A DNA stretch of 64,000 nt from Lepidodermella squamata (taxonomy: Eukaryota; Animalia; Gastrotricha). This document shows positions 18,001 through 56,150 of the stretch, piece after piece (the stretch's first letter is position 1; each line of letters opens with the position of its first letter). The notes beneath the pieces are model-generated. The model worked only from the letters and a program-made list of their open reading frames with translations. It made no database searches and had not been told where the DNA came from. Where the stretch lies: the NCBI GenBank assembly GCA_047495785.1, contig JBLDXI010000050.1, positions 455,908 through 519,907 of the forward strand, read 5' to 3'. The translations under genes and the position numbers were made by a program.

Positions 18001-20343
18001 TGCTCGGGTGCGAAACGATAATGCCTCGCCGACAGAACGCGTTGTGTCTGCTCATTGTGGTAGCTGTCACAGCAATGTCAGAAAATTCATTTCTCGGGTG
18101 CGAAACGATAATGCATGGCAGACAGAACGCGTCGTGTCAGTTCATTGTGGTAGCTCTCACAGAAATTTCAGGAAATTGATTGCTCGGGTGCGAAACGATA
18201 ATGCCTGGCAGACAAAAGGCGCCGTGTCCGATCATTGTGGTAGCTGTCACAGAAATGTCAGAAAATTCATTTCTCGGGTGCGAAACGATAATGCCTGGCA
18301 GACAAAAGGCGCCGTGTCCGATCATTGTGGTAGCCATCACAGGAATTTCAGGAAATTCATTGCTCGGGTGCGAAACGATAATGCCTCGCCGACCGAACGC
18401 GTTGTGCCTGCTCATTGTGGTAGATGTAACAGAAATGTCAGAAAATTCATTTCTCGGGTGCGAAACGATAAGGCCTGGCAGACAAAACGCGCCGTGTCCG
18501 ATCATTGTGGTAGCTCTCACAGAAATTCCAGAAAATTCATTGCCCTTGAGTGAATGGAGAATGCCTCGCCGACAGAACGCGTCGTGTCTGTTCATTGTGG
18601 TAGATGTCACAGAAATGTCAGAAAATTCATTTCTCGGGTGCGAAACGATAATGCCTCGCCGACAGAACGCGTTGTGTCTGCTCATTGTGGTAGCTGTCAC
18701 AGCAATGTCAGAAAATTCATTTCTCGGGTGCGAAACGATAATGCATGGCAGACAGAACGCGTCGTGTCAGTTCATTGTGGTAGCTCTCACAGAAATTTCA
18801 GAAAATTCATTGCCCTTGAGTGAATGGAGAATGCCTCGCCGACAGAACGCGTCGTGTCTGTTCATTGTGGTAGATGTCACAGAAATTTCAGGAAAATCTT
18901 TGCTCGGGTGCGAAACGATAATGCCTCGCCGATAGAACGCGTTGTGTCTGCTCATTGTGGTAGCTGTCACAGCAATGTCAGAAAATTCATTTCTCGGGTG
19001 CGAAACGATAATGCATGGCAGACAGAACGCGTCGTGTCAGTTCATTGTGGTAGCTCTCACAGAAATTTCAGGAAATTCATTGCTCGGGTGCGAAACGATA
19101 ATGCCTGGCAGACAAAACGCGCCGTGTCCGATCATTGTGGTAGCTCTCACAGAAATTCCAGAAAATTCATTGCCCTTGAGTGAATGGAGAATGCCTCGCC
19201 GACAGAACGCGTCGTGTCTGTTCATTGTGGTAGATGTCACAGAAATTTCAGGAAAATCTTTGCTCGGGTGCGAAACGATAATGCCTCGCCGACAGAACGC
19301 GTTGTGTCTGCTCATTGTGGTAGCTGTCACAGCAATGTCAGAAAATTCATTTCTCGGGTGCGAAACGATAATGCATGGCAGACAGAACGCGTCGTGTCAG
19401 TTCATTGTGGTAGCTCTCACAGAAATTTCAGGAAATTGATTGCTCGGGTGCGAAACGATAATGCCTGGCAGACAAAAGGCGCCGTGTCCGATCATTGTGG
19501 TAGCTGTCACAGAAATGTCAGAAAATTCATTTCTCGGGTGCGAAACGATAATGCCTGGCAGACAAAAGGCGCCGTGTCCGATCATTGTGGTAGCCATCAC
19601 AGGAATTTCAGGAAATTCATTGCTCGGGTGCGAAACGATAATGCCTCGCCGACCGAACGCGTTGTGCCTGCTCATTGTGGTAGATGTAACAGAAATGTCA
19701 GAAAATTCATTTCTCGGGTGCGAAACGATAAGGCCTGGCAGACAAAACGCGCCGTGTCCGATCATTGTGGTAGCTCTCACAGAAATTTCAGAAAATTCAT
19801 TGCCCTTGAGTGAATAGAGAATTCCTCGCCGACAGAACGCGCCGTGTCCGATCATTCTGGTAGCTCTCACAGAAAATTCATTGCCCTTGAGTGAAAGAAG
19901 AACGCCTCGCCGACAGAGCGCGTCGTGTCCGATCATTGTGGTAGCTCTCACAGCAATTTCAGAACATTCATTTCTCGGGTGCGAAACGATAATGCCTGGC
20001 AGACAAAACGCGCCGTGTCAGTTTATTGTGGTAGCTCTCAAAGAAATTTCAGAAAATTCATTGCTCGGGTGCGAAACGATAATGCCTGGCAGACAAAACG
20101 CATCGTGTCAGTTAATTTCGCTAGCTCTCACAGAAAATTCAGAAAATTTATTGCCCTTGAGTGAATGGAGAATGCCTCGCCGACAGAACGCATCGTGTCC
20201 GATCATTGTGGTAGCTCTCACAGAAATGTCATGAAATGAATTGTCTAGGAGGAAATCGAGAATACAGCCAGACATGACGCATCGTGTCAGTTCATTCTGG
20301 TAGCTCTCACAGAAATTTCAGGAAATTCATTGCTCGGGTGCGA
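1..20343. repeat. 90-bp tandem satellite, block 1 (homogeneous domain, mostly full 90-bp monomers, 180-bp dimer structure)
   Basis: Head-to-tail repeat, approximate consensus ATAATGCCTGGCAGACAAAACGCGTCGTGTCCGATCATTGTGGTAGCTCTCACAGAAATTTCAGAAAATTCATTGCTCGGGTGCGAAACG. The 90-bp period is directly visible (monomers start at 1, 91, 181, 271...). The array continues past the left window edge. Confidence 0.98.
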
Positions 20344-21228
20344 TCCGGGCGATCCGTTCTTTAAGCGATTGCATCGAACTGCAGAAAGACTTGGATGAAA
20401 TCATCAACTGGTTTGACGCTAACGGCCTGTCTGTGAATTCGAAAAAATGCGTCGTGCTTATACTCGGGCAAAACAAATTTATGTTCAAATTCAAAATTAA
20501 AGATGTCGAGCTTGATGTTGTGGACTCAGTGAAAGACCTCGGAATAATTATTGATAAAAATCTCACCTTCTCTGAGCACTGTAACGCATTGGCAACTAAA
20601 TGCCTCAGAATTAACGGTGTTATTTGTAAATCGTTCGCCTCTAAATCCTTACGTCTCAAAGCCTATAAAACGTATACTTTATCTCGTCTTGACTTTTGCC
20701 CGTCTGTTTACTCGCGTTACCTAATAACAGATATTGAAAAGGTCGAATCGATTCAAATCCGCTTCACAAAACGTTTGCTATATCGTAGTACCTACTACTC
20801 ATCGATCGAAGGCTCTTCCTATGAAGAACGACTAAAAAAGCTTGGGTTGTGTTCACTCGAATTAAGACGCTACCAACACGATCTTGCGTTATGTCATAAA
20901 ATGTACCAGCGTGCTGTGGACTTAAATTTCTCTGACTTCTTTAATATTTCCACTAATCCGCGCTTACCGCATCATTCTGTTACGATGGAAAGCTACAGTC
21001 ATGCCAGCTCTCAGTTTTCATTTGTGAGGCGAGTGCGTCCAGCCTGGAACCGGCTACCATCTTCCGTCGTTAATAATTCGTATTCTTCATTCTTGAAATA
21101 TCTTAAATGTACTGACTTGGAAAAATTCACAATTTCTGTGGTGAGGCGCCATAACTTAACGTTTTGTTAATTCTTAATTGCTAAATGTCGAAAGACAAAT
21201 TGCAAAATAAAACAGTATCAGTACTACC
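20344..21228 (+). mobile_element. 5'-truncated non-LTR retrotransposon (LINE, CR1/L2-like), 885 bp, flanked by GCGA duplication
   Basis: Non-satellite insert. GCGA lies at 20340-20343 and 21229-21232, and removing the insert restores gggtGCGAaacgat. It encodes the C-terminal part of an RT ORF. AATAAA at 21206-21211 is followed by a short CAGTAT-CAGTAC repeat tail rather than poly(A), as expected for CR1/L2-group elements. Confidence 0.9.
20346..21170 (+). pseudogene. LINE ORF2 fragment: end of the reverse transcriptase domain and C-terminal region
   Basis: Open frame reads SDCIELQKDLDEIINWFDANGLSVNSKKC...VKDLGIIIDKNLTFSEHC...IEKVESIQIRFTKRL...SYEERLKKLGLCSLELRRYQHDL, motifs typical of CR1/L2/Jockey-group ORF2 just after the YADD box. 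The YADD motif and endonuclease are missing (5' truncation). The remaining part has no internal stops. Confidence 0.88.
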
Positions 21229-24200
21229 GCGAAACGATAATGCCTGGCAGACAAAACGTGTCGTGTCCGATCATTGTGGTAGCTCTCAGAGAAATTTCAG
21301 GAAATTCATTGCCCTTGAGTGAATGGAGAATGCCTCGCCGAAAGAACGCGTCGTGTCCGATTATTGTGGTAGCTCTCACATAAATTTCAGGAAATTCATT
21401 GCTCGGGTGCGAAACGATAATGCCTGGCAGACAAAACGCATCGTGTCCGATCATTGTGGTAGCTCTCACAGAAATGTCATGAAATGAATTGTCTAGGAGG
21501 AAATCGAGAATACAGCCAGACATGACGCATCGTGTCAGTTCATTGTGGTAGCTCTCACAGAAATTTCAGGAAATTCATTGCTCGGGTGCGAAACGATAAT
21601 GCCTGGCAGACAAAACGTGTCGTGTCCGATCATTGTGGTAGCTCTCAGAGAAATTTCAGGAAATTCATTGCCCTTGAGTGAATGGAGAATGCCTCGCCGA
21701 AAGAACGCGTCGTGTCCGATTATTGTGGTAGCTCTCACATAAATTTCAGGAAATTCATTGCTCGGGTGCGAAACGATAATGCCTGGCAGACAAAACGCAT
21801 CGTATCAGTTAATTGTGGTAGCTCTTACAGAAATTTCAGAAAATTCATTGCCCTTGAGTGAAAGGAGAATGGCTCGCCGAAAGAACGCATCGTGTCTGTT
21901 TATTGTGGTAGCCATCACAGGAATTTCAGGAAATTCATTGCTCGGGTGCGAAACGATAATGCCTCGCCGACAGAACGCATCGTGTATGTTTATTGTGGTA
22001 GCCATCACAGGAATTTCAGGAAATTCATTGCTCGGGTGCGAAACGATAATGCCTGGCAGACAAAACGCATCGTGTCCGATCATTGTGGTAGCCATCACAG
22101 AAATGTCATGAAATGAATTGTCTAGGAGGAAATCGAGAATACAGCCAGACATGACGCATCGTGTCAGTTCATTGTGGTAGCTCTTACAGAAATTTCAGAA
22201 AATTCATTGCCCTTGAGTGAATGGAGAATGCCTCGCCGACAGAACGCATCGTGTCTGTTTATTGTGGTAGCCATCACAGGAATTTCAGGAAATTCATTGC
22301 TCGGGTGCGAAACGATAATGCCTGGCAGACAAAACGCATCGTGTCCGATCATTGTGGTAGCCATCACAGAAATGTCATGAAATGAATTGTCTAGGAGGAA
22401 ATCGAGAATACAGCCAGACATGACGCATCGTGTCAGTTCATTGTGGTAGCTCTCACAGAAATTTCAGGAAATTCATTGCTCGGGTGCGAAACGATAATGC
22501 CTGGCAGACAAAACGTGTCGTGTCCGATCATTGTGGTAGCTCTCAGAGAAATTTCAGGAAATTCATTGCCCTTGAGTGAATGGAGAATGCCTCGCCGAAA
22601 GAACGCGTCGTGTCCGATTATTGTGGTAGCTCTCACAGAAATTTCAGGAAATTCATTGCTCTGGTGCGAAACGATAATGCCTGGCAGACAAAACGTGTCG
22701 TGTCCGATCATTGTGGTAGCTCTCAGAGAAATCTCAGAAAATTCATTGCTCGGGTGCGAAACGATAATGCCTGGCAGACAGAACGCATCGTGTCCGATCA
22801 TTGTGGTAGCTCTCAGAGAAATCTCAGAAAATTCATTGCTTGGGTGCGAAGCGATAATGCCTGGCAGACAAAACGTGTCGTGTTCGATCATTGTGGTAGC
22901 TCTCAGAGAAATTTCAGGAAATTCATTGCTCGGGTGCGAAACTATAATGCCTGGCAGACAAAACGCGCCGTGTCCGATCATTGTGGTAGCTCTCACAGAA
23001 ATTTCAGAAAATTCATTGCGCGGGTCCGATCATTGTGGTAGCTCTCAGAGAAATCTCAGAAAATTCATTGCTCGGGTGCGAAACGATAATGCCTGGCAGA
23101 CAAAAAGCATCGTGTCCGATCATTGTGGTAGCTCTCACAGAAATTTCAGAAAATTCATTGCCCTTGAGTGAAAGGAGAATGCCTCGCCGACAGAACGCAT
23201 CGTGTCTGTTCATTGTGTTAGCTGTCACAGAAATGTCATGAAAAGAATTGTCTAGGAGGAAATCGAGAATACAGCCAGACATGACGCATCGTGTCAGTTC
23301 ATTGTGGTAGCTCTCACAGAAATTTCAGGAAATTCATTGCTCGGGTGCGAAACGATAATGCCTGGCAGACAAAACGCATCGTGTCCGATCATTGTGGTAG
23401 CTCCCACAGAAATGTCATGAAATGAATTGTCTAGGAGGAAATCGAGAATACAGCCAGACAAAACGCGCCGTGTCCGATCATTGTGGTAGCTCTCGCAGAA
23501 AATTCATTGCCCTTGAGTGAATGGAGAATGGCTCGCCGACAGAACGCATCGTGTCTGTTTATTGTGGTAGCCATCACAGGAATTTCAGGAAATTCATTGC
23601 TCGGGTGCGAAACGATAATGCCTGCAGAAAAACGCATCTTGTCCGATCATTTTAGTAGCTCTCACAGAAATTTCAGACAATTCATTGCCCTTGAGTGAAT
23701 GGAGAATGCCTCGCCGACAGAACGCATCGTGTCTGTTTATTGTGGTAGCCATCACAGAAATTTCAGAAAATTTATTGCCCCTGAGTGAAAGGAGAATGCC
23801 TCGCCGACAGAACGCGTTGTGTCCGATCATTGTGGTAGCTCTCACAGAAATTTCAGTAAATTTATTGCCCTTGAGTGAAAGGAGAATGCCTCGCCGACAG
23901 AACGCGTCGTGTCTGTTCATTGTGTTAGCTGTCACAGAAATGTCATGAAAAGAATTGTCTAGGAGGAAATCGAGAATACAGCCAGACAGAACGCATCGTG
24001 TCCGATCATTGTGGTAGCTCTCACAGAAATTTCAGAAAATTCATTTCTCGGTTGCGAATCGATAATGCCTGCAGAAAAACGCATCTTGTCCGATCATTTT
24101 AGTAGCTCTCACAGAAATTTCAGAAAATTTATTGCCCTTGAGTGAAAGGAGAATGCCTCGCCGCCAGAACGCATCGTGTCTGTTTATTGTGGTAGCCATC

Positions 24201-30200: not shown

Positions 30201-30348
30201 TTCAGGAAATTCATTGCTCGGGTGCGAAACGATAATGCCTGGCAGACAAAACGCAGCGTGTCCGATCGTTGTGATAGCTCTCACAGAAATTTCAGAAAAT
30301 TCATTTCTCGGTTGCGAATCGATAATGCCTGCAGAAAAACGCATCTTG
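21229..30348. repeat. 90-bp satellite, block 2 (transition zone, then diverged domain with 89/88/81/56/33-bp variant monomers)
   Basis: Same monomer core (TCATTGTGGTAGCTCTCACAGAAATTTCAGAAAATTCATT) with new diagnostic variants: TCTAGGAGGAAATCGAGAATACAGCC, CCTGCAGAAAAACGCATCTT and GGGATCGAAACGATTTC. Confidence 0.97.
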
Positions 30349-30675
30349 TGTAACCGGTGTGAAGTCGACCATGACGAACCGCCGCTCAGATCGTCGACAT
30401 GCTACGCATCACCGGCATCGTAGCGCGGTTCCACTCGGCTTACACCGCTACGGCTCACTGACGTTTTAGCGCGATCCCTGTAGCCGACACAGTAGCTGAT
30501 GTTTCGCATGACCGGTTCTCATCATCCGGAACCAACACGGCCTCGAAAAACAACCCATCCTGATAGTATTTAAGCTGATGTAATTTGTCGATAAAATAAC
30601 AAGTTGTACAAGTATAATAAAGTTGTGAGATTACCACTTCTGCCGTCTCTTGCCTAGTGTCGAACCCCTGTTACA
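30349..30675 (+). repeat. 5' LTR (327 bp)
   Basis: Direct repeat of 38595-38921. Begins TGTAAC and ends GTTACA. Contains TATTTAA (30567-30573, TATA-like) and AATAAA (30616-30621). Confidence 0.98.
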
Positions 30676-30678
30676 TTT

Positions 30679-30693
30679 TGGTGTCAGAAGTGG
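30679..30693 (+). promoter_or_regulatory. Primer-binding site complementary to the 3' end of tRNA-Leu(CAA)
   Basis: TGGTGTCAGAAGTGG, 3 nt after the 5' LTR, is the reverse complement of ...CCACTTCTGACACCA. That matches the 3' end of metazoan tRNA-Leu(CAA) as I recall it; not searched. Confidence 0.88.
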
Positions 30694-30900
30694 CTCTAGC
30701 CAAGAACGGCAGATCCCGCAGTCAAGTTGGAACCGGTCGACCCAAGCGAGCAAGACCAAACCGAAGCAAGCAACCAAGCTACTAACACTAGCAGAAGAAG
30801 CCAAGCGGAAGCAAGCAAACCATCCACCGACCTCCTTGCAATTACCCTAAAGAGACTTGGTCAGAAAACCAGCGCGCAGAAGAAGCCAGCAGCAACAACA

Positions 30901-32031
30901 ATGACGACAACTCTGTCTATCGACAAGGCGACGACGATCATCCCGAAAATCACCGGCGAATCATGGATGGCATTCGACAATGAGTGGCGACAATTCGTCG
31001 ATATCGTTCACGCTTGTGGTGGCGCCGACCCATTGCCGATACCAACGAGTGGAGCAGACCCAAATGCCTCGGAACCACAAAAATCCAAGGTCGAGAAGAT
31101 GCAATATTTTGTCAACATCCTGGGATCGTTCCTACGCGGAAAAGCACTTCAAGTCTGGTATGAAGGTAACCGAGACGACATCAAAACGCTAGCAACAGCA
31201 AAAGCAGTACTGGAGGAAGGCCTCAACCTAAGACTGACAGCAGGCAGAGCAACGAAGCAGTTCTTCTCACGCGTACAAGGCACAAACGAAACGGTACGTG
31301 ATTACATCGGCGACCTCAAACGCATAATGCAACACATGGGCAAAACGGAAAGCGAACGTGAGTACTGCCTGACACAACGTTTCCTAATGGGAATTAAACC
31401 AGCACTACGGGTGGCAGTCTTCCGGCACGGCGAACCGAAGTCACTACAGAGCGCGTATGAACTAGCAGCCCTAGAAGAAGCCGCGCTGAATTCAACGACA
31501 CTAAGCGAAAACGGAGCAGTTGTAGCCCAAGTATGGCCAACACCGGACGACATCGGAACCAACGACCCCGTGAAGCTACTGGTTCAGTTGGTACGCGATC
31601 AAAACGAGATGCTACAAACTATGAAATCGTTAGTCGGACGGAGCAATAATCGTGAGCCCGATCAACGACAGTTTAGCAATAACAACCGCCGATACCCACC
31701 ACGACAACAGCAAAACGGACGAAACGGTCAACAACAGCCGAGACCACCTACAGCGGGTTGCTACAATTGCGGACGCCACGGCCATATCGCGAGAAACTGT
31801 AACAACGGAAGATCTTGCTACAAGTGCGGACGACGAGGACACGTGCAAGCCCAATGTCGAAGTCAAGCACCTACAAACCAGACACCGAACGACCGTTACC
31901 CACAAAACCAACCCGACGCAACAGTAAAGCCATGGAACGTACAACAAGTCACGGAAGATCCGATCTACTGGCAACCGCAAGTCGACGAATGGGGAAACGC
32001 AAACGGGTCGACCCCTTGTCCGGGAAAGTAG
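30901..32031 (+). CDS. gag: Gag polyprotein (capsid-like region and two CCHC zinc knuckles), about 376 aa
   Basis: First ATG after the LTR is at 30901 (the frame is also open upstream, from the TTG at 30727). Retrotransposon capsid-like motifs FLRGKALQVW and RVQGTNETVRDYIGDL. Knuckles CYNCGRHGHIARNC and CYKCGRRGHVQAQC. Confidence 0.93.
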   Translation: MTTTLSIDKATTIIPKITGESWMAFDNEWRQFVDIVHACGGADPLPIPTSGADPNASEPQKSKVEKMQYFVNILGSFLRGKALQVWYEGNRDDIKTLATAKAVLEEGLNLRLTAGRATKQFFSRVQGTNETVRDYIGDLKRIMQHMGKTESEREYCLTQRFLMGIKPALRVAVFRHGEPKSLQSAYELAALEEAALNSTTLSENGAVVAQVWPTPDDIGTNDPVKLLVQLVRDQNEMLQTMKSLVGRSNNREPDQRQFSNNNRRYPPRQQQNGRNGQQQPRPPTAGCYNCGRHGHIARNCNNGRSCYKCGRRGHVQAQCRSQAPTNQTPNDRYPQNQPDATVKPWNVQQVTEDPIYWQPQVDEWGNANGSTPCPGK

Positions 32032-35000
32032 CGGAACGACCCAAGCAACAAGACGATACGAACGACCCGGAAGCATGTATGACGGTAAACAATGTAAATA
32101 ACAATAAGGTGGCGGGTTACGGATTACATGCTGATGTTTCATTTAATAGTAGTGATGTAGGAAAACATATATCGAAAAATTTGTTGTTTATGTTAGACAC
32201 AGGCGCAGAAATTAGTTGTATCAATAGCAAACATGTCCCGAAGTCAACAACCCTGGAACCAGCGTTAGCAGTCGGTGCAGACGGTCAAGACCTCAGCGTG
32301 CGAGGAAAAACCAAGTGCGAAGTTACCCCGGAAAATGGTCAAGCATACAAGGACGAAGTTTTGGTTGTCGAAGGTTTGTGCACCGACGGACTACTCGGGT
32401 TCGACTTCATGAAGCAAAACGCCAACGGTATCAACTTCCAACGCAAGACGCTCGAATTCAAGGAAGGTCCAGTAAAACTCAAAGAAGTCCAATCAAGGCG
32501 AAAAATGTTGGCAGCCGTACATGCTAGCGAAAAAGTGGAGATCCCAGCGTTCAGTGTCAAAGCGATCCGAGGTACCATTGGTGATGGTAAACGGAAATCG
32601 TACGGAACAGGCATCGTTGTCGGCGCCGAAAACACTTGCAATCAGAAAATGTGCGAAGTTATCCCTAGCCTGACAAAGACACCGTACGGACAAGTCAACG
32701 TACTTTATGTCAATCTGATGGACGAAGCGGTAAGCATTGAAAAAGATGAACCTATTGCAGGGTATGAAGAGGCCGAAGAAGCAACAATCCAAACGATCGG
32801 TAAATTCCGACGTGCGACCGAAACCGAAAGGAAGCAACTCCCAAAGCCAAACCTCCGCCAGCTGATCAAACTACACAGCGACATCCCGAAAGAACACGCC
32901 GAGAAATTCTACCAGCTAGCAGAAAAATACCCTGAAATCTTCTCTGTCTCGGACGACGATTTCGGGTACACCACCTACGTCAAGCACGAAATTCGAACAA
33001 ATGGCGGCCCAATCCGTCAAACCGGTTACCGCCTGGGACGAAGCCAACTGGAAGAAGTCGAGTCGAAAATCAAGGATATGCTTAAGAAAAAGGTAATTCG
33101 CCCCAGTTCATCTGCATGGTCATCACCGATCGTCATGGTACCCAAAAAGTCGGGCGAAATGAGATTCTGTGTCGACCTGCGCAAAGTCAACGACGTCACG
33201 GAGAAAGATGCGTTCCCACTACCACGTACCGACGACATATTGGAAGCACTGGGAGGATCGCAACTGTACAGTACTATGGACCTTACCAGCGGATACTGGC
33301 AATTGGAACTCGAAGAATCAAGCAAGGAGAAGACCGCGTTCGTCACACCCTTCGGACTCTACGAATTCAACCGCATGCCATTCGGGCTGTGTAACGCCCC
33401 AGCCACGTTTCAAAGATTGATGATGTTCGTACTAAACGGCCTGTTATACCGCGAAGTTTTGGTGTACCTCGACGACATCATCGTATTCAGCAAGACACTT
33501 GAAGAGCAACTCGAACGTCTTGAACGAGTTTTCATTCGACTGCGTGATGCAGGTTTGAAAATTAAACCATCTAAATGCAATTTTCTTTGTCCTTCAGTTA
33601 CCTACTTGGGACACGTCGTCTCGAAAGATGGTATCAAACCCGATCCGAATCGCATTTCAGCTGTCAAAAACTGGCCGACACCTAATAGTGCCGCACAAGT
33701 GCGATCATTCCTGGGCCTAGCCAATTATTATCGGCGTTTTGTTCCAAAATTCGCCGACATTGCGAAACCACTATACAATCTCCTCAAGAAAGGCGAGAAA
33801 TTCAACTGGACAACAGAAACAAAACAATCCTTCGAAACATTGCGTGACAAACTGGTTACTCACCCGATCTTGGCCTACCCGAACTTCGAGTTACCCTTCA
33901 GAGTCGACACTGATGCTTCAAACTTTGCTATCGGAGCCATCCTGAGTCAAAAACAAGACGGACAAGAACGAGTCATTGCCTACGCGAGCCGAACATTGAA
34001 CCAGGCTGAACGAAACTACATGACGACGGAACGAGAACTCTTGGCTGCAACATGGGGTGTGGCGCAATTCGCACCATTCTTGAAATCCAAAGCGCAAGGT
34101 GGAGCATTCGAGCTATGGACCGACCACAACCCTTTGACAAGTCTACGCGCTTTGAAAGATCGCGGAGGAAAGCTAGCACGATACGAGTATCAACTGATGC
34201 CCTATGAAATCACGTTCAAATGGAGAAAAGGCATCGACCATTCTAATGCCGATAGTCTGTCGCGAAGACCCGACCTTGAAGCTTTACCAATGGTCGGAAA
34301 AATCATCACGTTCGAACAACCAGACATCAACCGCGACGACGTTAAAATCGCACAACGAGAAGACGGAGAACTGAATTTGATTATAAAGCAATTGGAAGAG
34401 AATCCAGCGATCGGCGAAAAGTATGGTTTAAAATTAGCTGACAATGTTCTTTATCGTTACAGAGGTGAAAAAGGAGCAATCGTTATCCCGCCGGCGTTAA
34501 GACCTACAATTCTTAAGGCGATCCACGACGATATGGGTCACCTAGGCACCGAACGAACCCTTCAACGATTACGCGAACGATTCTACTGGCGCGGTTTCGA
34601 ACTCGATACCGAAATCTACGTCAAATGTTGCGAACAATGTCAACGCCGCAAGAACCCACCAAAAACCCCTGTGGCCCCGCTCAACCCGATTGTGGTCAAC
34701 CGACCAATGGAAATCGTCGGATGGGATGTCATGGGACCGATACAGCCAACATCGTCGAGTGGTCACCAGTACATTCTCGTCATTGGCGACTTATTCTCCA
34801 AATACATCGAAGCATTCCCAATGAAAAACTACACGTCGGAAACACTGCTAAAACACCTCAACGGTTTTATGCTTCGCCACGGAGTACCTCAAAAACTTTT
34901 GAATGATCAAGGTAGTTCGCTGAATTCTGAAGTTGTTGAACAGGTTTGCAAGATGCTGAAAATCAAACACGTTCGAACTTCGAGCTACCACGCCCAAACA

Positions 35001-35837
35001 AATGGTTTCGTTGAACGACAGAACCGGAACCTTCAAAACATGCTAGCCAAGTACCTTCACGGCAAGTCACAGCGCGAATGGGATAGTTACCTGCCAGTTG
35101 CAGTGTTCGCCTACAACACTTCGGAGCACGAATCAACGAAGTACATGCCATATTTCCTATGGTACGGACGACCGCCACGCATCCCGATCGATGCCTTGCA
35201 ACTGTACGAACCCTATCACGCCAGCGGTCTTACCCCATCGAAAGAAGACCCACAAGGCTATGCTACGAAAACATGGGCAGCACTGCGCGATGCGTACGAA
35301 GCGACACGGCAAAGACTCTTGAAAGCGCAAGCACGCCAAAAGGACCAGTACGACAAAAAGGAGAACGTGACAAACTACGTAACGGGACAATTGGTTTGGC
35401 TCAATTTACGCACGGTAAACACGAAAAATAACGAAGGTCGCAAATGGCTACTCAGTTGGCGAGGCCCGTTCACCGTACTGGCACCGTTGAAGAACAGCAC
35501 CTACTTGATTCGACTGTTTGATGGCAGTGGACCGGAGAAAGTTGTACACCACAATCGATTGAAACCGTATTTCGGATGCCCACCGAGAACGACTAAACAA
35601 TGGACGGAAAATGTTGGCAGTGACGATCTCGACGTAATCGTTGAAGACCCCGACGAATCAACCAATTGGCCAGAATTCTGGGCAAGTCACAATGTCGAGG
35701 AACAGTCGGAGCGACCGACGGTCGAGCAACCTGCACCGGCGAGAAGTGACGAACGAGTAATTCCGATCAGATCATTCACGGACGACTTCCTGGAGGAAAC
35801 GGATCGACTACTACAAGGATTGCCAATTCACAAATGA
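31815..35837 (+). CDS. pol: Pol polyprotein (protease, reverse transcriptase, RNase H, integrase), probably translated as Gag-Pol from about 31998
   Basis: Protease LDTGA. RT motifs MRFCVDLRKVN, MDLTSGYWQ, MPFGLCNAPATFQ and YLDDII. RNase H motifs TDAS, TERELLA and TDHNPL. Integrase HHCC (HDDMGH...CEQC), DDE core (WDVMGP, NDQG, VERQN) and GPF motif. No stops or frameshifts. Confidence 0.97.
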   Translation: MLQVRTTRTRASPMSKSSTYKPDTERPLPTKPTRRNSKAMERTTSHGRSDLLATASRRMGKRKRVDPLSGKVAERPKQQDDTNDPEACMTVNNVNNNKVAGYGLHADVSFNSSDVGKHISKNLLFMLDTGAEISCINSKHVPKSTTLEPALAVGADGQDLSVRGKTKCEVTPENGQAYKDEVLVVEGLCTDGLLGFDFMKQNANGINFQRKTLEFKEGPVKLKEVQSRRKMLAAVHASEKVEIPAFSVKAIRGTIGDGKRKSYGTGIVVGAENTCNQKMCEVIPSLTKTPYGQVNVLYVNLMDEAVSIEKDEPIAGYEEAEEATIQTIGKFRRATETERKQLPKPNLRQLIKLHSDIPKEHAEKFYQLAEKYPEIFSVSDDDFGYTTYVKHEIRTNGGPIRQTGYRLGRSQLEEVESKIKDMLKKKVIRPSSSAWSSPIVMVPKKSGEMRFCVDLRKVNDVTEKDAFPLPRTDDILEALGGSQLYSTMDLTSGYWQLELEESSKEKTAFVTPFGLYEFNRMPFGLCNAPATFQRLMMFVLNGLLYREVLVYLDDIIVFSKTLEEQLERLERVFIRLRDAGLKIKPSKCNFLCPSVTYLGHVVSKDGIKPDPNRISAVKNWPTPNSAAQVRSFLGLANYYRRFVPKFADIAKPLYNLLKKGEKFNWTTETKQSFETLRDKLVTHPILAYPNFELPFRVDTDASNFAIGAILSQKQDGQERVIAYASRTLNQAERNYMTTERELLAATWGVAQFAPFLKSKAQGGAFELWTDHNPLTSLRALKDRGGKLARYEYQLMPYEITFKWRKGIDHSNADSLSRRPDLEALPMVGKIITFEQPDINRDDVKIAQREDGELNLIIKQLEENPAIGEKYGLKLADNVLYRYRGEKGAIVIPPALRPTILKAIHDDMGHLGTERTLQRLRERFYWRGFELDTEIYVKCCEQCQRRKNPPKTPVAPLNPIVVNRPMEIVGWDVMGPIQPTSSSGHQYILVIGDLFSKYIEAFPMKNYTSETLLKHLNGFMLRHGVPQKLLNDQGSSLNSEVVEQVCKMLKIKHVRTSSYHAQTNGFVERQNRNLQNMLAKYLHGKSQREWDSYLPVAVFAYNTSEHESTKYMPYFLWYGRPPRIPIDALQLYEPYHASGLTPSKEDPQGYATKTWAALRDAYEATRQRLLKAQARQKDQYDKKENVTNYVTGQLVWLNLRTVNTKNNEGRKWLLSWRGPFTVLAPLKNSTYLIRLFDGSGPEKVVHHNRLKPYFGCPPRTTKQWTENVGSDDLDVIVEDPDESTNWPEFWASHNVEEQSERPTVEQPAPARSDERVIPIRSFTDDFLEETDRLLQGLPIHK
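31992..32052 (+). promoter_or_regulatory. -1 programmed ribosomal frameshift signal (G_GGA_AAC plus downstream structure)
   Basis: Heptamer G GGA AAC at 31992-31998 is correctly phased in the gag frame, and pol is in the -1 frame. After a 6-nt spacer, GGGTCG (32005-32010) can pair with CGACCC (32037-32042). Confidence 0.85.
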
Positions 35838-35924
35838 ACAGTAGTAACCAGTAACCCCGAAACCCTTAGTATGTAGTAAGATTAAAGAAAGTGGTTGCTG
35901 CGCGGCGTCAAGCGCCAGCGCAAG

Positions 35925-35945
35925 GTGTATGTGTTTTGTTTTTAG
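35925..35945 (+). promoter_or_regulatory. Putative 3' splice acceptor for env subgenomic mRNA
   Basis: T-rich tract GTGTTTTGTTTTTAG ends at 35945, immediately before the env ATG at 35946. Confidence 0.7.
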
Positions 35946-37784
35946 ATGAATATTTTATCTTATGTTATATGGAGTGCGACGATAATTGGAACGGTAGCGA
36001 CGCCCGTCGAGCAGGAATTTTGGCAGAAGCTGTTACTTCTTGGTCGCAGTCATGAAATGATCGCATGGTATGACACTGAAGTCCCTGTTGTCCTCCACCA
36101 CGACCTCCACTTCCGACCACTCCATATCCGAGCCGGCATGTTCAAGTGGAAGGCCCTCAAAGCCATGATTGACCAATGGAACGCCAATTTCCCCAAACTA
36201 ACCCCAATATTCACCGATACCGTCGACGACAACCGTCGAGCCAAACGGGACGTTTGCGAGTATGCGGTGCTACGATGGTTCTATGAACTTTTCAATGGAA
36301 AATGCTCGATATTGGGCAGGGGCGCCAAAGAAGCGCTACTCGATGAAGCCAACACCCTTCAACGCGAAAACACCGTAGCCCGAATAATCAATGACCAGAC
36401 GGCAACACTGTCGACGGAGGCTCATCAACTCCATAGTGAAGTGGGCGACATTGAGGATTTTCTCACTAATTATTATCAAGGTGGAGTGGGCAATGCGGTC
36501 GATTCTCAATTACTACTAGCAGTGTGGCATTTATCGAATTTCGTCGAACAACGCACCGTTTGGGACCAGATCGAACGGTTGAAGGCTGCAAGTCGCATGG
36601 GAAGCTTTGCAATCAGCGATTTGCCGAACGCTGTACGTGCTAAATTCGAAACAGTCGTCATCTCTGCGATCAACCACATTAACGGTTCGGAACTTACGCG
36701 GGCGATGGTCCTAGGGCACGCACCGATCTTCCAACGACCACACTTCCAGTGGGTTACCGAGCAGTCACAAGTAAGCTTCCAACTAAGGGCGTCGCTACCA
36801 ATCGTCGCGATGGAGAGTTGCCATATCTTCCGATTGTCACCAGTGACGTTGAAAACAAACCGCGGTTGTGTAGGACCTGCCGAAGACGCTTACAAGGGCA
36901 AGTTAATTTTGAAATGTGTTGACAAGTACTTTTATTTTGAAGAGAGCCGGCTGGCACAATGTCATCAAGCCAACGCCAGAACCTATCTTTGCGATAACGC
37001 CGCAAGCCAATCCCGAGTTACAGTTCGGCCGAACGCCCATTCACTCGATGTTCTGGCGCATGGCGAGTCAGTGGTGTGCCCGAGATTAAAAACGATTCGA
37101 ATCAGTGGAGATACCGTGTTGTTGACTGGAGATGCCCGGGTCAAGTTTACGAAAGGGGAGAACGTCTCCGAGGAGTTGGCACCGGCTGGTACGGTGATGC
37201 AAATTCCGTGTGGTGGCTCGCTCCAAGTTGCCGACGAGCTACCGCTGATGGTTGTTGGATCCAACTGTATGGACAATCTTTCGATGGCGCCAATCGAAAT
37301 TGCAAGTGTTGACGAGCTCGATTTTACGGTGAATACGAATCAGTCGAATAATACTGTGTTGGAAACCCTGGTGACAAAGATGGTGGCAAGTCGAAAATCG
37401 GATAAGTGGGCAGATTTAGAAGCAGCGTACACCCGTCGTAGTAACGAAATTGGCAATCTGTTCGCGAAAACGGACGAGGAACTCGCTAACGTCAAAGCTG
37501 AAATTGCTAAGATAGTCGAAATTGGCGATCAAGTTCCGCTTGTATGGTACTTCTTGGCAACAATCCTGATGATCCTGTCGATGGCAAATTCTGTAGCTTT
37601 GGTGTTTCTTCTTGGTCGTACAAAGGTGGCAACGACAATTCGTTCGGTAGTACGACCGCAACCAGAACCGCAACTAAGCTTAACGCCGACGGCAGTTCGG
37701 TACGATAAGGAAGAAGATATCGTTTTCATCACGCCACCTGACGAACCCGACGAGCCCGACGTTAAAGATGGGCACCTCATTTAG
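35946..37784 (+). CDS. env: Env-like membrane glycoprotein (putative class I fusion protein), 612 aa
   Basis: Third ORF after pol. Hydrophobic N-terminal signal peptide. Furin-type site RRAKR (aa 97-101) followed by a hydrophobic Cys-flanked segment and a heptad-like helix. Cys-rich middle, N-X-S/T sequons (NGS, NVS, NLS, NQS, NNT), membrane-proximal helix, TM segment at about aa 532-557 and an acidic tail. Confidence 0.85.
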   Translation: MNILSYVIWSATIIGTVATPVEQEFWQKLLLLGRSHEMIAWYDTEVPVVLHHDLHFRPLHIRAGMFKWKALKAMIDQWNANFPKLTPIFTDTVDDNRRAKRDVCEYAVLRWFYELFNGKCSILGRGAKEALLDEANTLQRENTVARIINDQTATLSTEAHQLHSEVGDIEDFLTNYYQGGVGNAVDSQLLLAVWHLSNFVEQRTVWDQIERLKAASRMGSFAISDLPNAVRAKFETVVISAINHINGSELTRAMVLGHAPIFQRPHFQWVTEQSQVSFQLRASLPIVAMESCHIFRLSPVTLKTNRGCVGPAEDAYKGKLILKCVDKYFYFEESRLAQCHQANARTYLCDNAASQSRVTVRPNAHSLDVLAHGESVVCPRLKTIRISGDTVLLTGDARVKFTKGENVSEELAPAGTVMQIPCGGSLQVADELPLMVVGSNCMDNLSMAPIEIASVDELDFTVNTNQSNNTVLETLVTKMVASRKSDKWADLEAAYTRRSNEIGNLFAKTDEELANVKAEIAKIVEIGDQVPLVWYFLATILMILSMANSVALVFLLGRTKVATTIRSVVRPQPEPQLSLTPTAVRYDKEEDIVFITPPDEPDEPDVKDGHLI

Positions 37785-37846
37785 AATAGTTAACACTGTG
37801 TAGCAGGTAGCTCTTTGAACTGAAATATTCTTTTCTGCGCCGTTTG

Positions 37847-37852
37847 TTTATT
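37847..37852 (-). terminator. Minus-strand poly(A) signal AATAAA downstream of the antisense ORF
   Basis: TTTATT on + at 37847-37852, about 275 nt after the antisense ORF stop, at the end of an AT-rich UTR-like tract. Confidence 0.45.
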
Positions 37853-38126
37853 GAAAAGGGGAGGGAAAATAGTAAGTTGAATAGTGGAATGATTGTAGCA
37901 TTCATTACAGTAGTAACGTGCAGTAGTTTGTAGCGTATTATGCAAAGTAGTATACATAGTATACAATGTAGTTGTCGTATGCAATGAATGGTTGCGTGTG
38001 AATGGTAGTGTTGTATAGTTGCATGAATGACTCTGTAAAAACATGTAGTTCAGAATGTATTTTGTTTTGAAAAAGGTTATCTCACAACTCTACGGTCGAC
38101 TGTTCTATATCGGTGTTGGAGTGATG

Positions 38127-38480
38127 TCACGGAACGCGTTGCGGCGCATCCTCGTCGTTATTGTCATCGCCGCCAACAATTGCGACATTGGCAGCAGCCT
38201 GCGGCACAGCCCGATCCACGGTCGCGTCAATCGCGTTAAGCGCATCCGCAAGTTCTGGCGCGAATTCCGCAACCAAGGCCTCCAGCTCCGGATCGGGTGC
38301 CAATAATTGTTGACGGACGCTTTGATGGAAACGCATGACTGCGTCGTCAACTGCAACAGTGCGGGCTTGGTCAGCATAAACCGATAACTGGAGCTCGTAC
38401 GTCGCAATAATAAAATGGGCGAATTCTACGACACCCGCAATCGTCGTTAAGTCTAGAGCTTCGAGGCCCGCGATCGACAT
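38127..38480 (-). CDS. Antisense accessory ORF of unknown function (117 aa from ATG 38480; 163 aa if started at ATG 38618 in the 3' LTR)
   Basis: GC-rich, coding-like segment between AT-rich flanks. ATG lies in CAAAATG context. Product MSIAGLEALDLTTIAGVVEFAHFII...DDNNDEDAPQRVP is Ala/Leu/Val-rich, helical-looking and acidic. No homologue recognised. Confidence 0.55.
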   Translation of the reverse strand: MSIAGLEALDLTTIAGVVEFAHFIIATYELQLSVYADQARTVAVDDAVMRFHQSVRQQLLAPDPELEALVAEFAPELADALNAIDATVDRAVPQAAANVAIVGGDDNNDEDAPQRVP

Positions 38481-38584
38481 TTTGGCAATGTTGCAGATTT
38501 GAAAGTTTCCCAATTGAAATGAATAGGCAATGGCAAGTACCCCAACAAGTTGGTTTGATGGACACCGGTAGTCAAAGGATAAAC

Positions 38585-38594
38585 GGGGAGGAAA
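38585..38594 (+). promoter_or_regulatory. Polypurine tract (PPT)
   Basis: GGGGAGGAAA abuts the TG start of the 3' LTR at 38595. Confidence 0.9.
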
Positions 38595-38921
38595 TGTAAC
38601 CGGTGTGAAGTCGACCATGACGAACCGCCGCTCAGATCGTCGACATGCTACGCATCACCGGCATCGTAGCGCGGTTCCACTCGGCTTACACCGCTACGGC
38701 TCACTGACGTTTTAGCGCGATCCCTGTAGCCGACACAGTAGCTGATGTTTCGCATGACCGGTTCTCATCATCCGGAACCAACACGGCCTCGAAAAACAAC
38801 CCATCCTGATAGTATTTAAGCTGATGTAATTTGTCGATAAAATAACAAGTTGTACAAGTATAATAAAGTTGTGAGATTACCACTTCTGCCGTCTCTTGCC
38901 TAGTGTCGAACCCCTGTTACA
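38595..38921 (+). repeat. 3' LTR (327 bp)
   Basis: Matches 30349-30675 with no mismatch found by eye. AATAAA at 38862-38867. Confidence 0.98.
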
Positions 38922-41900
38922 CTTGTCCGATCATTTTAGTAGCTCTCACAGAAATTTCAGAAAATTCATTGCCCTTGAGTGAATGAAGAATGGCTCGCCG
39001 GCAGAACGCGACGTGTCCGATCATTGTGGTAGCTCTCACAGAAATTTCAGAAAATTTATTGCCCTCGAGTGAAAGGAGAATGCCTCGCCGACAGAACGCG
39101 TTGTGTCCGATCATTGTGGTAGCTCTCACAGAAATTTCAGAAAATTTATTGCCCTTGAGTGAAAGGAGAATGCCTCGCCGACAGAACGCGTTGTGTCCGA
39201 TCATTGTGGTAGCTCTCACAGAAATTTCAGAAAATTCATTTCTCGGGTGCGAAACGATAATGTGGTAGCTCTCACAGAAATTTCAGAAAATTCATTTCCC
39301 GGTTGCGAATCGATAATGCCTGCAGAAAAACGCATCTTGTCCGATCATTTTAGTAGCTCTCACAGAAATTTCAGAAAATTCATTGCCCTTGAGTGAATGA
39401 AGAATGGCTCGCTGGCAGAACGCGACGTGTCCGATCATTGTGGTAGCTCTCGCAGAAAATTCATTGCCCTTGAGTGAATGGAGAATGCCTCGCCGACAGA
39501 ACGCATCGTGTCTGTTTATTGTGGTAGCCATCACAGGAATTTCAGGAAATTCATTGCTCGGGTGCGAATCGATAATGCCTGCAGAAAAACGCATCTTGTC
39601 CGATCATTTTAGTAGCTCTCACAGAAATTTCAGACAATTCATTGCCCTTGAGTGAATGGAGAATGCCTCGCCGACAGAACGCATCGTGTCTGTTTATTGT
39701 GGTAGCCATCACAGAAATTTCAGAAAATTTATTGCCCTTGAGTGAAAGGAGAATGGCTCGCCGGCAGAACGCGACGTGTCGGATCATTTTGGTAGCTCTC
39801 ACAGAAATTTCAGAAAATTTATTGCCCTTGAGTGAAAGGAGAATGCCTCGCCGACAGAACGCGTTGTGTCCGATCATTGTGGTAGCTCTCACAGAAATTT
39901 CAGAAAATTCATTTCTCGGGTGCGAAACGATAATGTGGTAGCTCTCACAGAAATTTCAGAAAATTCATTTCCCGGTTGCGAATCGATAATGCCTGCAGAA
40001 AAACGCATCTTGTCCGATCATTTTAGTAGCTCTCACAGAAATTTCAGAAAATTCATTGCCCTTGAGTGAATGAAGAATGGCTCGCCGGCAGAACGCGACG
40101 TGTCCGATCATTGTGGTAGCTCTCGCAGAAAATTCATTGCCCTTGAGTGAATGGAGAATGGCTCGCCGACAGAACGCATCGTGTCTGTTTATTGTGGTAG
40201 CCATCACAGAAATTTCAGAAAATTCATTTCCCGGTTGCGAATCGATAATGCCTGCAGAAAAACGCATCTTGTCCGATCATTTTAGTAGCTCTCACAGAAA
40301 TTTCAGAAAATTCATTGCCCTTGAGTGAATGAAGAATGGCTCGCTGGCAGAACGCGACGTGTCCGATCATTGTGGTAGCTCTCGCAGAAAATTCATTGCC
40401 CTTGAGTGAATGGAGAATGCCTCGCCGACAGAACGCATCGTGTCTGTTTATTGTGGTAGCCATCACAGGAATTTCAGGAAATTCATTGCTCGGGTGCGAA
40501 TCGATAATGCCTGCAGAAAAACGCATCTTGTCCGATCATTTTAGTAGCTCTCACAGAAATTTCAGACAATTCATTGCCCTTGAGTGAATGGAGAATGCCT
40601 CGCCGACAGAACGCATCGTGCCTGTTTATTGTGGTAGCCATCACAGAAATTTCAGAAAATTTATTGCCCTTGAGTGAAAGGAGAATGCCTCGCCGACAGA
40701 ACGCGTTGTGTCTGCTTATTGTGTTAGCTGTCACAGAATTGTGAGAAAATTCATTTCTCGGGATCGAAACGATTTCAGGAAATTCATTGCTCGGGTGCGA
40801 AACGATAATGCCTGGCAGACAAAACGCATCGTGTCTGTTCATTGTGTTAGCTGTCACAGAAATGTCATGAAAAGAATTGTCTAGGAGGAAATTGAGAATA
40901 CAGCCAGACAGAACGCATCGTGTCCGATCATTGTGGTAGCTCTCATAGAAATTTCAGAAAATTCATTTCTCGGTTGCGAATCGATAATGCCTGCAGAAAA
41001 ACGCATCTTGTCCGATCATTTTAGTAGCTCTCACAGAAATTTCAGACAATTCATTGCCCTTGAGTGAATGGAGAATGCCTCGCCGACAGAACGCATCGTG
41101 TCTGTTTATTGTGGTAGCCATCACAGAAATTTCAGAAAATTTATTGCCCTTGAGTGAAAGGAGAATGCCTCGCCGACAGAACGCGTTGTGTCCGATCATT
41201 GTGGTAGCTCTCACAGAAATTTCAGTAAATTTATTGCCCTTGAGTGAAAGGAGAATGCCTCGCCGACAGAACGCGTTGTGTCTGCTTATTGTGTTAGCTG
41301 TCACAGAATTGTGAGAAAATTCATTTCTCGGGATCGAAACGATTTCAGGAAATTCATTGCTCGGGTGCGAAACGATAATGCCTGGCAGACAAAACGCATC
41401 GTGTCTGTTCATTGTGTTAGCTGTCACAGAAATGTCATGAAAAGAATTGTCTAGGAGGAAATTGAGAATACAGCCAGACAGAACGCGACGTGTCCGATCA
41501 TTGTGGTAGCTCTCGCAGAAAATTCATTGCCCTTGAGTGAATGGAGAATGGCTCGCCGACAGAACGCATCGTGTCTGTTTATTGTGGTAGCCATCACAGG
41601 AATTTCAGGAAATTCATTGCTCGGGTGCGAAACGATAATGCCTGCAGAAAAACGCATCTTGTCCGATCATTTTAGTAGCTCTCACAGAAATTTCAGACAA
41701 TTCATTGCCCTTGAGTGAATGGAGAATGCCTCGCCGACAGAACGCATCGTGTCTGTTTATTGTGGTAGCCATCACAGAAATTTCAGAAAATTTATTGCCC
41801 TTGAGTGAAAGGAGAATGCCTCGCCGACAGAACGCGTTGTGTCTGCTTATTGTGTTAGCTGTCACAGAATTGTGAGAAAATTCATTTCTCGGGATCGAAA

Positions 41901-54548: not shown

Positions 54549-56150
54549 CAGTGTTCCGAGACCGGGGGCTAAGGGGGAAGAATGATCCCCCAGAGAGCTG
54601 CGATGAAACTTTGAAGAGGATAAGCTTACCCCCTTGGAGCTAAAAATTTTGGAAAAATTGGCCCATTTTGAAACCAGCAGAATCATGGTTTTCTAGTGGA
54701 ATAGACGTCGAAAACTCAGCCTTGTTAAAGGAAATTCCCCTTTCCATGATTCCATCTTTTTCCACTAAGTAACAAGTAACAAGTCACTTTGATCGCTTAA
54801 AAAAAAATCAAGAAATCACTTCAAAATCGATAATCGATATTCGACAATCGATAAAGAGTTGCCAATATCAGAAAATAGACATCGCCAATGGATTTCCCGT
54901 GAAAAGTTACCCTAGATGACATGGCCTCGCCGTGATTCCTTATTGAGAAATAAAGATTCAATTTATAATGAAACAAAATTGTTCGTTTGTCTGCTTTCAC
55001 GGCCCTATTATAAATTGAAAAAATTAAAATTCCATAAAAAACCTCTTTAAGCTGCTTTTTTCAATACATAATCCCCCTTAACAACCCGAAGGGATAATTT
55101 CTGTATGCTGATTCCGTTCGCTTTTGCAGAATTTTCATAAAGATCACCGATCTCGAGATGATTAGGGGGTGCAATAAATTTATGACTTAATTGCCAATGA
55201 CCCAATTTTTCTTCAAATCCTAACGTGTAACATATATAATTATGCAGAATTTCGCGCTGAATCCAGCGGTGATGTCAGTTTTAAGATCAGACGCATGGTT
55301 GTCAATAAAAAGCTACCTTATTATAAGCGATTTTTACCATTATTTGTTGGCACAATTTATCGTAAACATGCAATTTTAATGGTTCTATGTCAATTGAGCA
55401 AACGAAAATTGAGCAACGAAAATAGAGCAAGGGCTTTTGAGCAACGATATGAGAGCAAACGACACGAGAGCAAAACGAGATTAGAGCAAAACGACACGAG
55501 AGCAAATTTAATAATTAATTGCAGCTGTTGTTTATTTTAAATAAAATTTGCTCTCGTGTCGTTTTGCTCTAATCTCGTTTTGCTCTCGTGTCGTTTTGCT
55601 CTAATCTCGTTTTGCTCTCGTGTCGTTTTGCTCTAATTTCGTTTTGCTCTAATCTCGTTTTGCTCTAATTACGTTTGCTCTAATATCGTTGCTCAAAAGC
55701 CCTTGCTCTATTTTCGTTGCTCAATTTTCGTTTGCTCAATTGACATAGAACCATTTTAAAGCAATCTTAAACTATTCTCAGCCATAATTGTCGAAAAATA
55801 CCGTCAGCTAAAGCTCGCTTCGCTCGCGTGCCTTATTTATTTTTAGTTGTCGGTGTCCGCGCCGAAGTCTTTTGGGGACCTTTGTATGATCCTTTTTCAT
55901 TCAAATTTGTACCCGAAAAGTGTGGACTATGGCTTCAATTGAGAGTACGATTTGAGATCGCAGAAATTGTTCGTCAAGAACCAGTGAGTCATCAGCAAAA
56001 TGAAAGTATGAAAAGTAGAGATGATTATGCTCCTTATAAACACTCTCGAACCAGTGATCAATGCGAGCGAACGCGCTAGCGTTCGCGAGCGAATTTTTTT
56101 TTAAGAAAATTGCCTTATCCCCCTCAGACCAAATCCTTCTCGGATCACTG
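54549..56150. mobile_element. Non-autonomous hAT-like DNA transposon, 1602 bp
   Basis: 8-bp TSD GTGAAAGG at 54541-54548 and 56151-56158. TIRs CAGTGTTCCGAGA and CAGTGATCCGAGA match 12/13. AT-rich interior with no transposase ORF. An 8-bp TSD with short CAG-starting TIRs is the hAT signature. Confidence 0.9.
55380..55753. mobile_element. Nested foldback-type MITE (long inverted arms built of 16-bp subrepeats), about 374 bp
   Basis: Left arm 55380-55509 and right arm 55544-55753 are reverse complements (TGGTTCTATGTCAATTGAGC...). Subrepeats GAGCAAAACGAGATTA and GAGCAAAACGACACGA. TTTTAA direct repeat at 55374-55379 and 55754-55759. Confidence 0.78.

Follow-up and report, generated by a model that had tools for sequence, protein, structure and literature searches.

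Is the DNA that separates the last sense gene from the 3' LTR in a Ty3/gypsy-type retrotransposon a mere spacer, or does it carry a gene of its own that is read backwards? This question is raised by an 810-bp spacer at 37785-38594, delimited by direct reading of the env-like stop and by the LTR boundaries. It lies in the window analysed here, that is, the whole 64-kb stretch of DNA. A first-pass annotation had proposed that an antisense accessory gene, transcribed from the 3' LTR, occupies this position. We conclude that the minus-strand open reading frame (ORF) in the spacer is probably an accessory or captured gene.

The carrier element and its satellite setting

The element at 30349-38921 is an intact, retrovirus-like Ty3/gypsy-type element, in which the gag, pol and env-like frames are all open with zero breaks. 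It is flanked by a 4-bp target-site duplication, CTTG (left copy at 30345-30348, right copy at 38922-38925), and the satellite unit into which it inserted is restored across both flanks. The 5' LTR (30349-30675, plus strand) has a length of 327 bp and TG..CA ends, and it is identical at 327 of 327 positions to the likewise 327-bp 3' LTR (38595-38921, plus strand). With its two LTRs 100% identical, the element is very young and recently inserted. Only one copy was found within the 64-kb window.

The gag ORF (30727-32031, plus strand) encodes a Retrotrans_gag domain and two CCHC zinc knuckles, and its first methionine is codon 59 of the listed frame. The pol ORF (31815-35837, plus strand) lies in the -1 frame relative to gag, and the order of its Pfam domains is RVP, RVT_1, RT_RNaseH, Integrase_H2C2, rve and Integrase_p58_C. 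The element thus has the LTRs, the target duplication, gag and the pol order PR-RT-RH-IN of the env-bearing metazoan Ty3/gypsy (errantivirus-like) elements. In the protein search, Pol was matched best, with about 50% identity, by unnamed proteins of metagenomes or assemblies. The named Pol relatives belong to fish, amphibians, a sponge, a pseudoscorpion and one green alga, with identities of 34-50%. An animal host is therefore probable, and we do not regard the DNA as human.

The third sense frame, the env-like ORF3 (35946-37784, plus strand, 612 aa), is assigned to the envelope class only by its topology. It has a hydrophobic N-terminus, an RRAKR motif at residues 97-101, one strong hydrophobic segment at residues 537-555, 10 cysteines and five N-x-S/T sites. 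The predicted arrangement of an N-terminal hydrophobic stretch, RRAKR and a C-terminal membrane segment would fit a class-I fusion glycoprotein of the F type or a gB-type one. The single-sequence AF2 model of this protein was unusable (pLDDT 34.8). The env-like ORF3 had no Pfam match, no PDB sequence match and no relative in the word search, and as an orphan itself it merits its own study.

Outside the element, the window is almost wholly 90-bp satellite, in which three mobile elements are inserted. The satellite covers 1-30344 and 38926-64000, with higher-order periods of 180, 270, 324, 404 and 480 bp. It comprises two or more sub-variants, with a changeover near 20.3-23 kb, and yields many chance ORFs of 80-120 aa on both strands. 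One of the other two insertions, at 20343-21229 (plus strand), is the tail of a 5'-truncated non-LTR retrotransposon, which ends in an AATAAA and a short tail before the satellite resumes. Its 259-aa open frame (20391-21170) reads like the C-terminal part of a LINE ORF2 and has no Pfam match. The other, a non-autonomous DNA transposon of about 1.6 kb (54549-56150), is flanked by an 8-bp target duplication, GTGAAAGG, and ends in 13-nt inverted repeats that match at 12 of 13 positions. It contains two inverted arrays of a 32-bp unit, at about 55400-55720.

Coding signature of the antisense frame

The antisense ORF occupies 38480-38127 on the minus strand, between the env-like stop (37784) and the start of the 3' LTR (38595). 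It comprises 354 nt, or 117 codons plus the stop, and runs from an ATG at 38480 in the context CAAAATG to a TGA at 38129-38127. By direct reading, the coordinates, length and start context in the first-pass annotation are exact. The same annotation is correct that the frame stays open upstream to an ATG at 38618, which lies inside U3 (the 3' LTR begins at 38595) and would give a 163-aa form. The layout convergent with env, which had also been claimed, is borne out: the frame is self-contained and lies downstream of the env-like gene.

The two forms differ in their coding signal. A sliding codon score along the spacer is positive only from about 38510 to about 38150, and the upstream extension (38481-38618, minus strand) is open and not coding-like, with a codon log-likelihood of -0.18 bits/codon and a periodicity chi2 of 4.1. 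Since the signal ends at about 38510 and the extension scores negatively, the coding unit is the 117-codon frame and not the 163-codon one. The 163-aa reading that starts in U3 was rejected for this lack of coding signal, and the extension is probably a 5' UTR or promoter zone.

The length of the antisense ORF is barely beyond chance. When the spacer is dinucleotide-shuffled, 4.5% of the shuffles contain an ATG-initiated ORF of 117 codons or more; for the whole element the figure is 87%. Much stronger is the dependence of nucleotide on codon position, with a chi2 of 57.1. In 1591 dinucleotide shuffles the longest open frames had a mean chi2 of 6.3 and none reached this value, nor did any of 425 satellite windows (maximum 23.6). 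Even the in-frame windows of gag, pol and env stay below the antisense ORF, with a maximum of 35.6. No tandem repeats that could be the source of the periodicity were found in the ORF.

Codon usage was scored with a table built from the element's own gag, pol and env. The antisense ORF scores +0.17 bits/codon; counting the stop codon lowers this to +0.12. For shuffled ORFs the score is -0.07 +/- 0.07, and none of the 1591 reaches the antisense ORF; likewise, none of the 208 satellite ORFs does (at most 0.03). True in-frame windows of the genes score 0.19 +/- 0.09, and windows that are off-frame or antisense to them never rise above -0.07. The GC content of the antisense ORF at codon positions 1, 2 and 3 is 0.73, 0.40 and 0.55, the same ordering as in gag, pol and env. 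About half of its codons are GNN (23 Ala, 13 Val, 12 Asp, 8 Glu and 4 Gly out of 117), which is why the periodicity exceeds that of the element's own genes and why the protein is somewhat low in complexity.

Taken together, these measures clearly show a strong coding signature, which begins at the ATG of the antisense ORF and ends at its stop; the frame did not arise by chance. The earlier proposal is supported in part, by codon signature and layout, and the length of the ORF adds little.

A decayed sense gene, of which the minus-strand ORF would be a shadow, was also considered and rejected. The plus-strand frame aligned to the antisense ORF scores negatively and contains four stops, whereas gag, pol and the env-like gene are unbroken. 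That the antisense ORF is itself intact is uninformative on purifying selection, because the LTRs are 100% identical.

Spacer anatomy and the predicted antisense transcript

Read from the env-like stop to the LTR, the spacer consists of a purine 17-mer, a C-poor tract, the GC- and CpG-rich ORF block and an AT-richer stretch of 114 nt, and its composition switches sharply at about 38100 and about 38480. The 17-mer (37853-37869, plus strand) is all-purine and resembles a polypurine tract (PPT). It shares a GGGGAGG..AAA core with the polypurine tract adjoining the 3' LTR (38585-38594, plus strand), which was located by direct reading and from the LTR boundary. Placed just past the env-like stop, the 17-mer is maybe a relic PPT that predates the cassette, or a second plus-strand priming site. 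The C-poor, AT-rich tract (37861-38059, with 4-7 C per 50 nt) is correspondingly G-poor on the minus strand, where it is the putative 3' UTR of the antisense mRNA. It is flanked by 17-nt direct repeats at 37844-37860 and 38060-38076. This anatomy suggests a composite spacer that formed when a cassette entered between the LTR and an earlier polypurine tract.

Comparison of the spacer with the remainder of the element and of the window revealed no similarity. An inverted match of 16/18 between 38075-38092 and 38864-38881 (and 30618-30635), in R/U5 of the LTRs, has an E-value of 1.8 over the whole window and is probably due to chance.

The candidate poly(A) signal of the antisense mRNA is a minus-strand AATAAA at 37852-37847, about 275 nt past the ORF stop. 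It is present where the first-pass annotation had noted it, 63 nt from the env-like stop at 37784. It is one of only two minus-strand AATAAA motifs in the element, and the chance expectation for such a motif in a 300-nt AT-rich trailer is about 0.4 by arithmetic from base composition; taken singly, the motif is at chance level. Outside the LTRs, the plus strand of the element has a single AATAAA, at 38409-38414. It falls within the antisense ORF, some 180 nt before the 3' LTR begins, and might act as a premature poly(A) signal for sense transcripts.

At the other end of the predicted transcript, the stretch from the outer end of the 3' LTR to 38481 contains eight ATGs on the minus strand, of which only that at 38618 shares an open frame with the ORF. 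Because of these eight upstream ATGs, the ATG at 38480 is the first start only if transcription begins within 38617-38481. The predicted start zone is therefore at the U3 edge and the PPT region, closer to what an own promoter just upstream of the ORF would give than to LTR-driven transcription, and initiation deep within the LTR is disfavoured. The original proposal of transcription from the 3' LTR is not supported, given the upstream ATGs and with no core-promoter set recognised. The Inr-like TCATTT that had been pointed out at 38522-38517 (minus strand) is indeed present. It is a chance-level motif, with four minus-strand and two plus-strand occurrences in the element, and by reading it has neither a TATA at -30 nor a DPE match at +28.

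From these signals we propose that a genuine coding frame at 38480-38127 forms a compact antisense cassette within the 3' internal region of the element, located between the polypurine-like 17-mer past the env-like stop and the working PPT with the 3' LTR. A monocistronic antisense mRNA of about 0.65-0.7 kb would start in the 137-nt interval 38617-38481 and end past the minus-strand AATAAA, near 37830. Translation from the ATG at 38480 would then give a 12.4-kDa acidic protein (pI about 4) free of Lys, Cys and Trp. Furthermore, such an antisense RNA would match the 3' end of any sense transcript by complementarity along its whole length and could thus enter small-RNA pathways.

The predicted protein, competing readings and known antisense genes

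The predicted antisense protein has a mass of 12.4 kDa and a pI of 4.05, with 20 Asp and Glu residues, five Arg and zero Lys, Cys and Trp. The absence of Lys has a probability of 0.08 and is not significant. No membrane segment was found in the protein. AF2, run without an alignment, modelled four to five helices with low confidence (pLDDT 62.8, pTM 0.41), and the protein is probably helical.

Searches with the 163-aa form gave no match at E <= 0.001 in an exhaustive search of 1.84 billion representative proteins, and nothing in a word-indexed protein search, in Pfam at E <= 0.1 or in PHROGs. Against PDB sequences it matched only a lamin coiled coil, with an E-value of 1.2. The 117-aa form found nothing in PHROGs or PADLOC and a single sub-threshold, unrelated match each in Pfam (at E <= 10) and NCBIfam. 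The Foldseek comparison that had been suggested as a check was run with the low-confidence AF2 model and gave no significant fold match in PDB (best E-value 1.3) or BFVD (0.79), where the best matches were generic helical bundles. This absence of relatives says little, because none was found for the env-like protein either and even the best Pol match reaches only about 50% identity. The element's family is simply unsampled in the searched collections, and the exact proteins of the present copy are absent there.

The roles listed by the first-pass annotation (silencing suppressor, targeting factor or regulator) find no backing in a domain, a fold match, a basic region or a bZIP. Since the protein is acidic and without a basic or DNA-binding region, a protein-binding role is the most likely one. 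It may be an accessory factor whose partner would be basic, either a host factor or one of the element's own proteins (nucleocapsid or integrase), and binding of this partner would modulate the expression or life cycle of the element. Function is the least supported step of the proposal and is suggested by composition alone.

Whether 38480-38127 truly serves the element as an antisense accessory gene, with a short antisense mRNA as its transcript, is in our judgement about an even call. The strongest competing reading is that the element carries a useless passenger, a complete or partial coding sequence captured from the host or from another mobile element and placed in reverse between the older PPT and the LTR. 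Both readings rest on genuine minus-strand coding sequence, so the coding signature is explained equally well by either. The composite spacer, with its PPT-like tract after the env-like stop, its direct repeats and its sharp switches of composition, would be natural for a captured sequence, and a periodicity and GNN share beyond those of the element's own genes hint at a different origin. Moreover, transduced ORFs in one or few copies are known in LTR retrotransposons (PMC7264820). We nevertheless consider a passenger unlikely: no source gene was found among the 1.84 billion representative proteins, the codon usage fits the element's own table, and the signal coincides exactly with a good-context ATG and a stop, which is not expected of a captured fragment.

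A role at the RNA level, with the frame being incidental, is considerably less probable. The spacer would then act as an antisense transcript that pairs with sense RNAs, to regulate them or to trigger small RNAs, or as an element of the sense 3' UTR such as an export signal. Some retroviruses have export elements between env and the 3' LTR. In addition, no core-promoter set was recognised for the antisense ORF and its protein is only a predicted one, and non-coding antisense RNAs of LTR elements are documented, for example for micropia, as cited in PMC7264820. A strong frame-specific codon signature is not expected of a non-coding RNA, however, and neither half of the spacer folds better than its shuffles (z = +0.29 and -0.18); no Rfam match for the spacer was found at E <= 1.

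Least probable is a chance ORF in a GC-rich, stop-poor non-coding stretch, for which the frequency of equally long ORFs in shuffles, the ORFs of 83 and 100 aa that overlap the antisense ORF in other frames of this block and the lack of relatives in any library searched could be cited, but which is contradicted by a periodicity and codon score beyond all 1591 shuffled ORFs, a codon score beyond the 208 satellite ORFs, a chi2 beyond the 425 satellite windows and a signal bounded by ATG and stop.

Returning to the antisense accessory gene, several known systems share its layout. Antisense ORFs termed aORF-3R are found in plant Ty3/gypsy elements, namely gene23 of maize Grande, rice RIRE2, Silene Retand and Phaseolus PvRetro13 (PMC7264820; see also PMC11963269). 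Their products have no clear database similarity and the ORF is kept across copies (PMC7264820). The ORF studied here shares with those of the plant elements its antisense orientation and its place between the 3' LTR and the last of the sense genes. The Grande promoter is located immediately upstream of the ORF and not deep in the LTR (PMC7264820), a position that matches the constraint set by the upstream ATGs of the present ORF. The plant elements differ in having very long 3' internal regions and no 612-aa env-like ORF, in contrast to the env-like ORF and 810-bp spacer found here. Moreover, the named Pol relatives of the present element are mostly from animals, and no sequence similarity was found for its antisense ORF.

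Another example is brtn, an antisense gene of the Boty-like Ty3/gypsy elements of Botrytis cinerea (Zhao et al. 2011, as cited in PMC7264820). Like the present ORF, brtn is antisense and additional to the usual genes of a Ty3/gypsy element whose host is not a plant. It differs in its fungal host and in that the Boty elements have no env-like gene; our searches returned no similarity to it.

The third comparison is with retroviruses. HBZ of HTLV-1 is a bZIP factor that is transcribed from within the 3' LTR. Like HBZ, the present ORF is encoded on the minus strand near the 3' end, is convergent with env and is placed between env and the 3' LTR. Its protein differs in having no bZIP or basic region (0 Lys, 5 Arg, pI 4.05), and a start deep in the LTR is disfavoured here by the eight upstream minus-strand ATGs. 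No HBZ-like or bZIP chain was returned by the PDB sequence and fold searches, and HBZ, the HIV-1 antisense protein, Grande gene23 and Boty brtn were all missing from the matches of the antisense-protein searches. HBZ is accompanied by antisense genes of other complex retroviruses in the literature (Barbeau and Mesnard 2011, as cited in PMC7264820).

Besides these antisense genes, extra ORFs of several types, called ORF3, were captured by the metazoan LTR retrotransposons Juno and Vesta of bdelloid rotifers, according to the portion of PMC5408684 that deals with them. These elements resemble the present one in being metazoan and Ty3/gypsy-type, with family-specific extra ORFs downstream of pol, some of which have no known homologues. 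They differ in that several of the extra ORFs have recognisable enzymatic domains; in the same portion of that source the ORFs are described as downstream of pol and none is mentioned as antisense.

Judged by these sequence comparisons, the layout is a match to aORF-3R, brtn and HBZ, but the present ORF is not a member of these groups, as there is no sequence similarity, no bZIP and a different carrier element. The fullest version of our reading is one that we hold tentatively, at somewhat less than an even chance. It holds that an env-bearing Ty3/gypsy-type element, probably of an animal, carries a true fourth gene, evolved or acquired. This gene would be read backwards from the edge of the 3' LTR, as an independent counterpart of the HBZ and aORF-3R layout that arose by convergence, and it would encode an orphan, Lys-free, acidic and helical protein that serves the element.

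Antisense genes beside the 3' LTR are already known from complex vertebrate retroviruses, some plant Ty3/gypsy lineages and one fungal lineage. In a limited full-text literature search, which is not proof of absence, no antisense ORF was found described in env-bearing or errantivirus-like Ty3/gypsy elements outside plants and fungi. The codon-signature test cleanly separates the antisense ORF from equally long chance ORFs in the window and is applicable to other single-copy candidates. If the antisense ORF is expressed and conserved, the same layout would have arisen repeatedly in reverse-transcribing elements, and an accessory gene would be added to a group that is usually described as gag-pol-env only.
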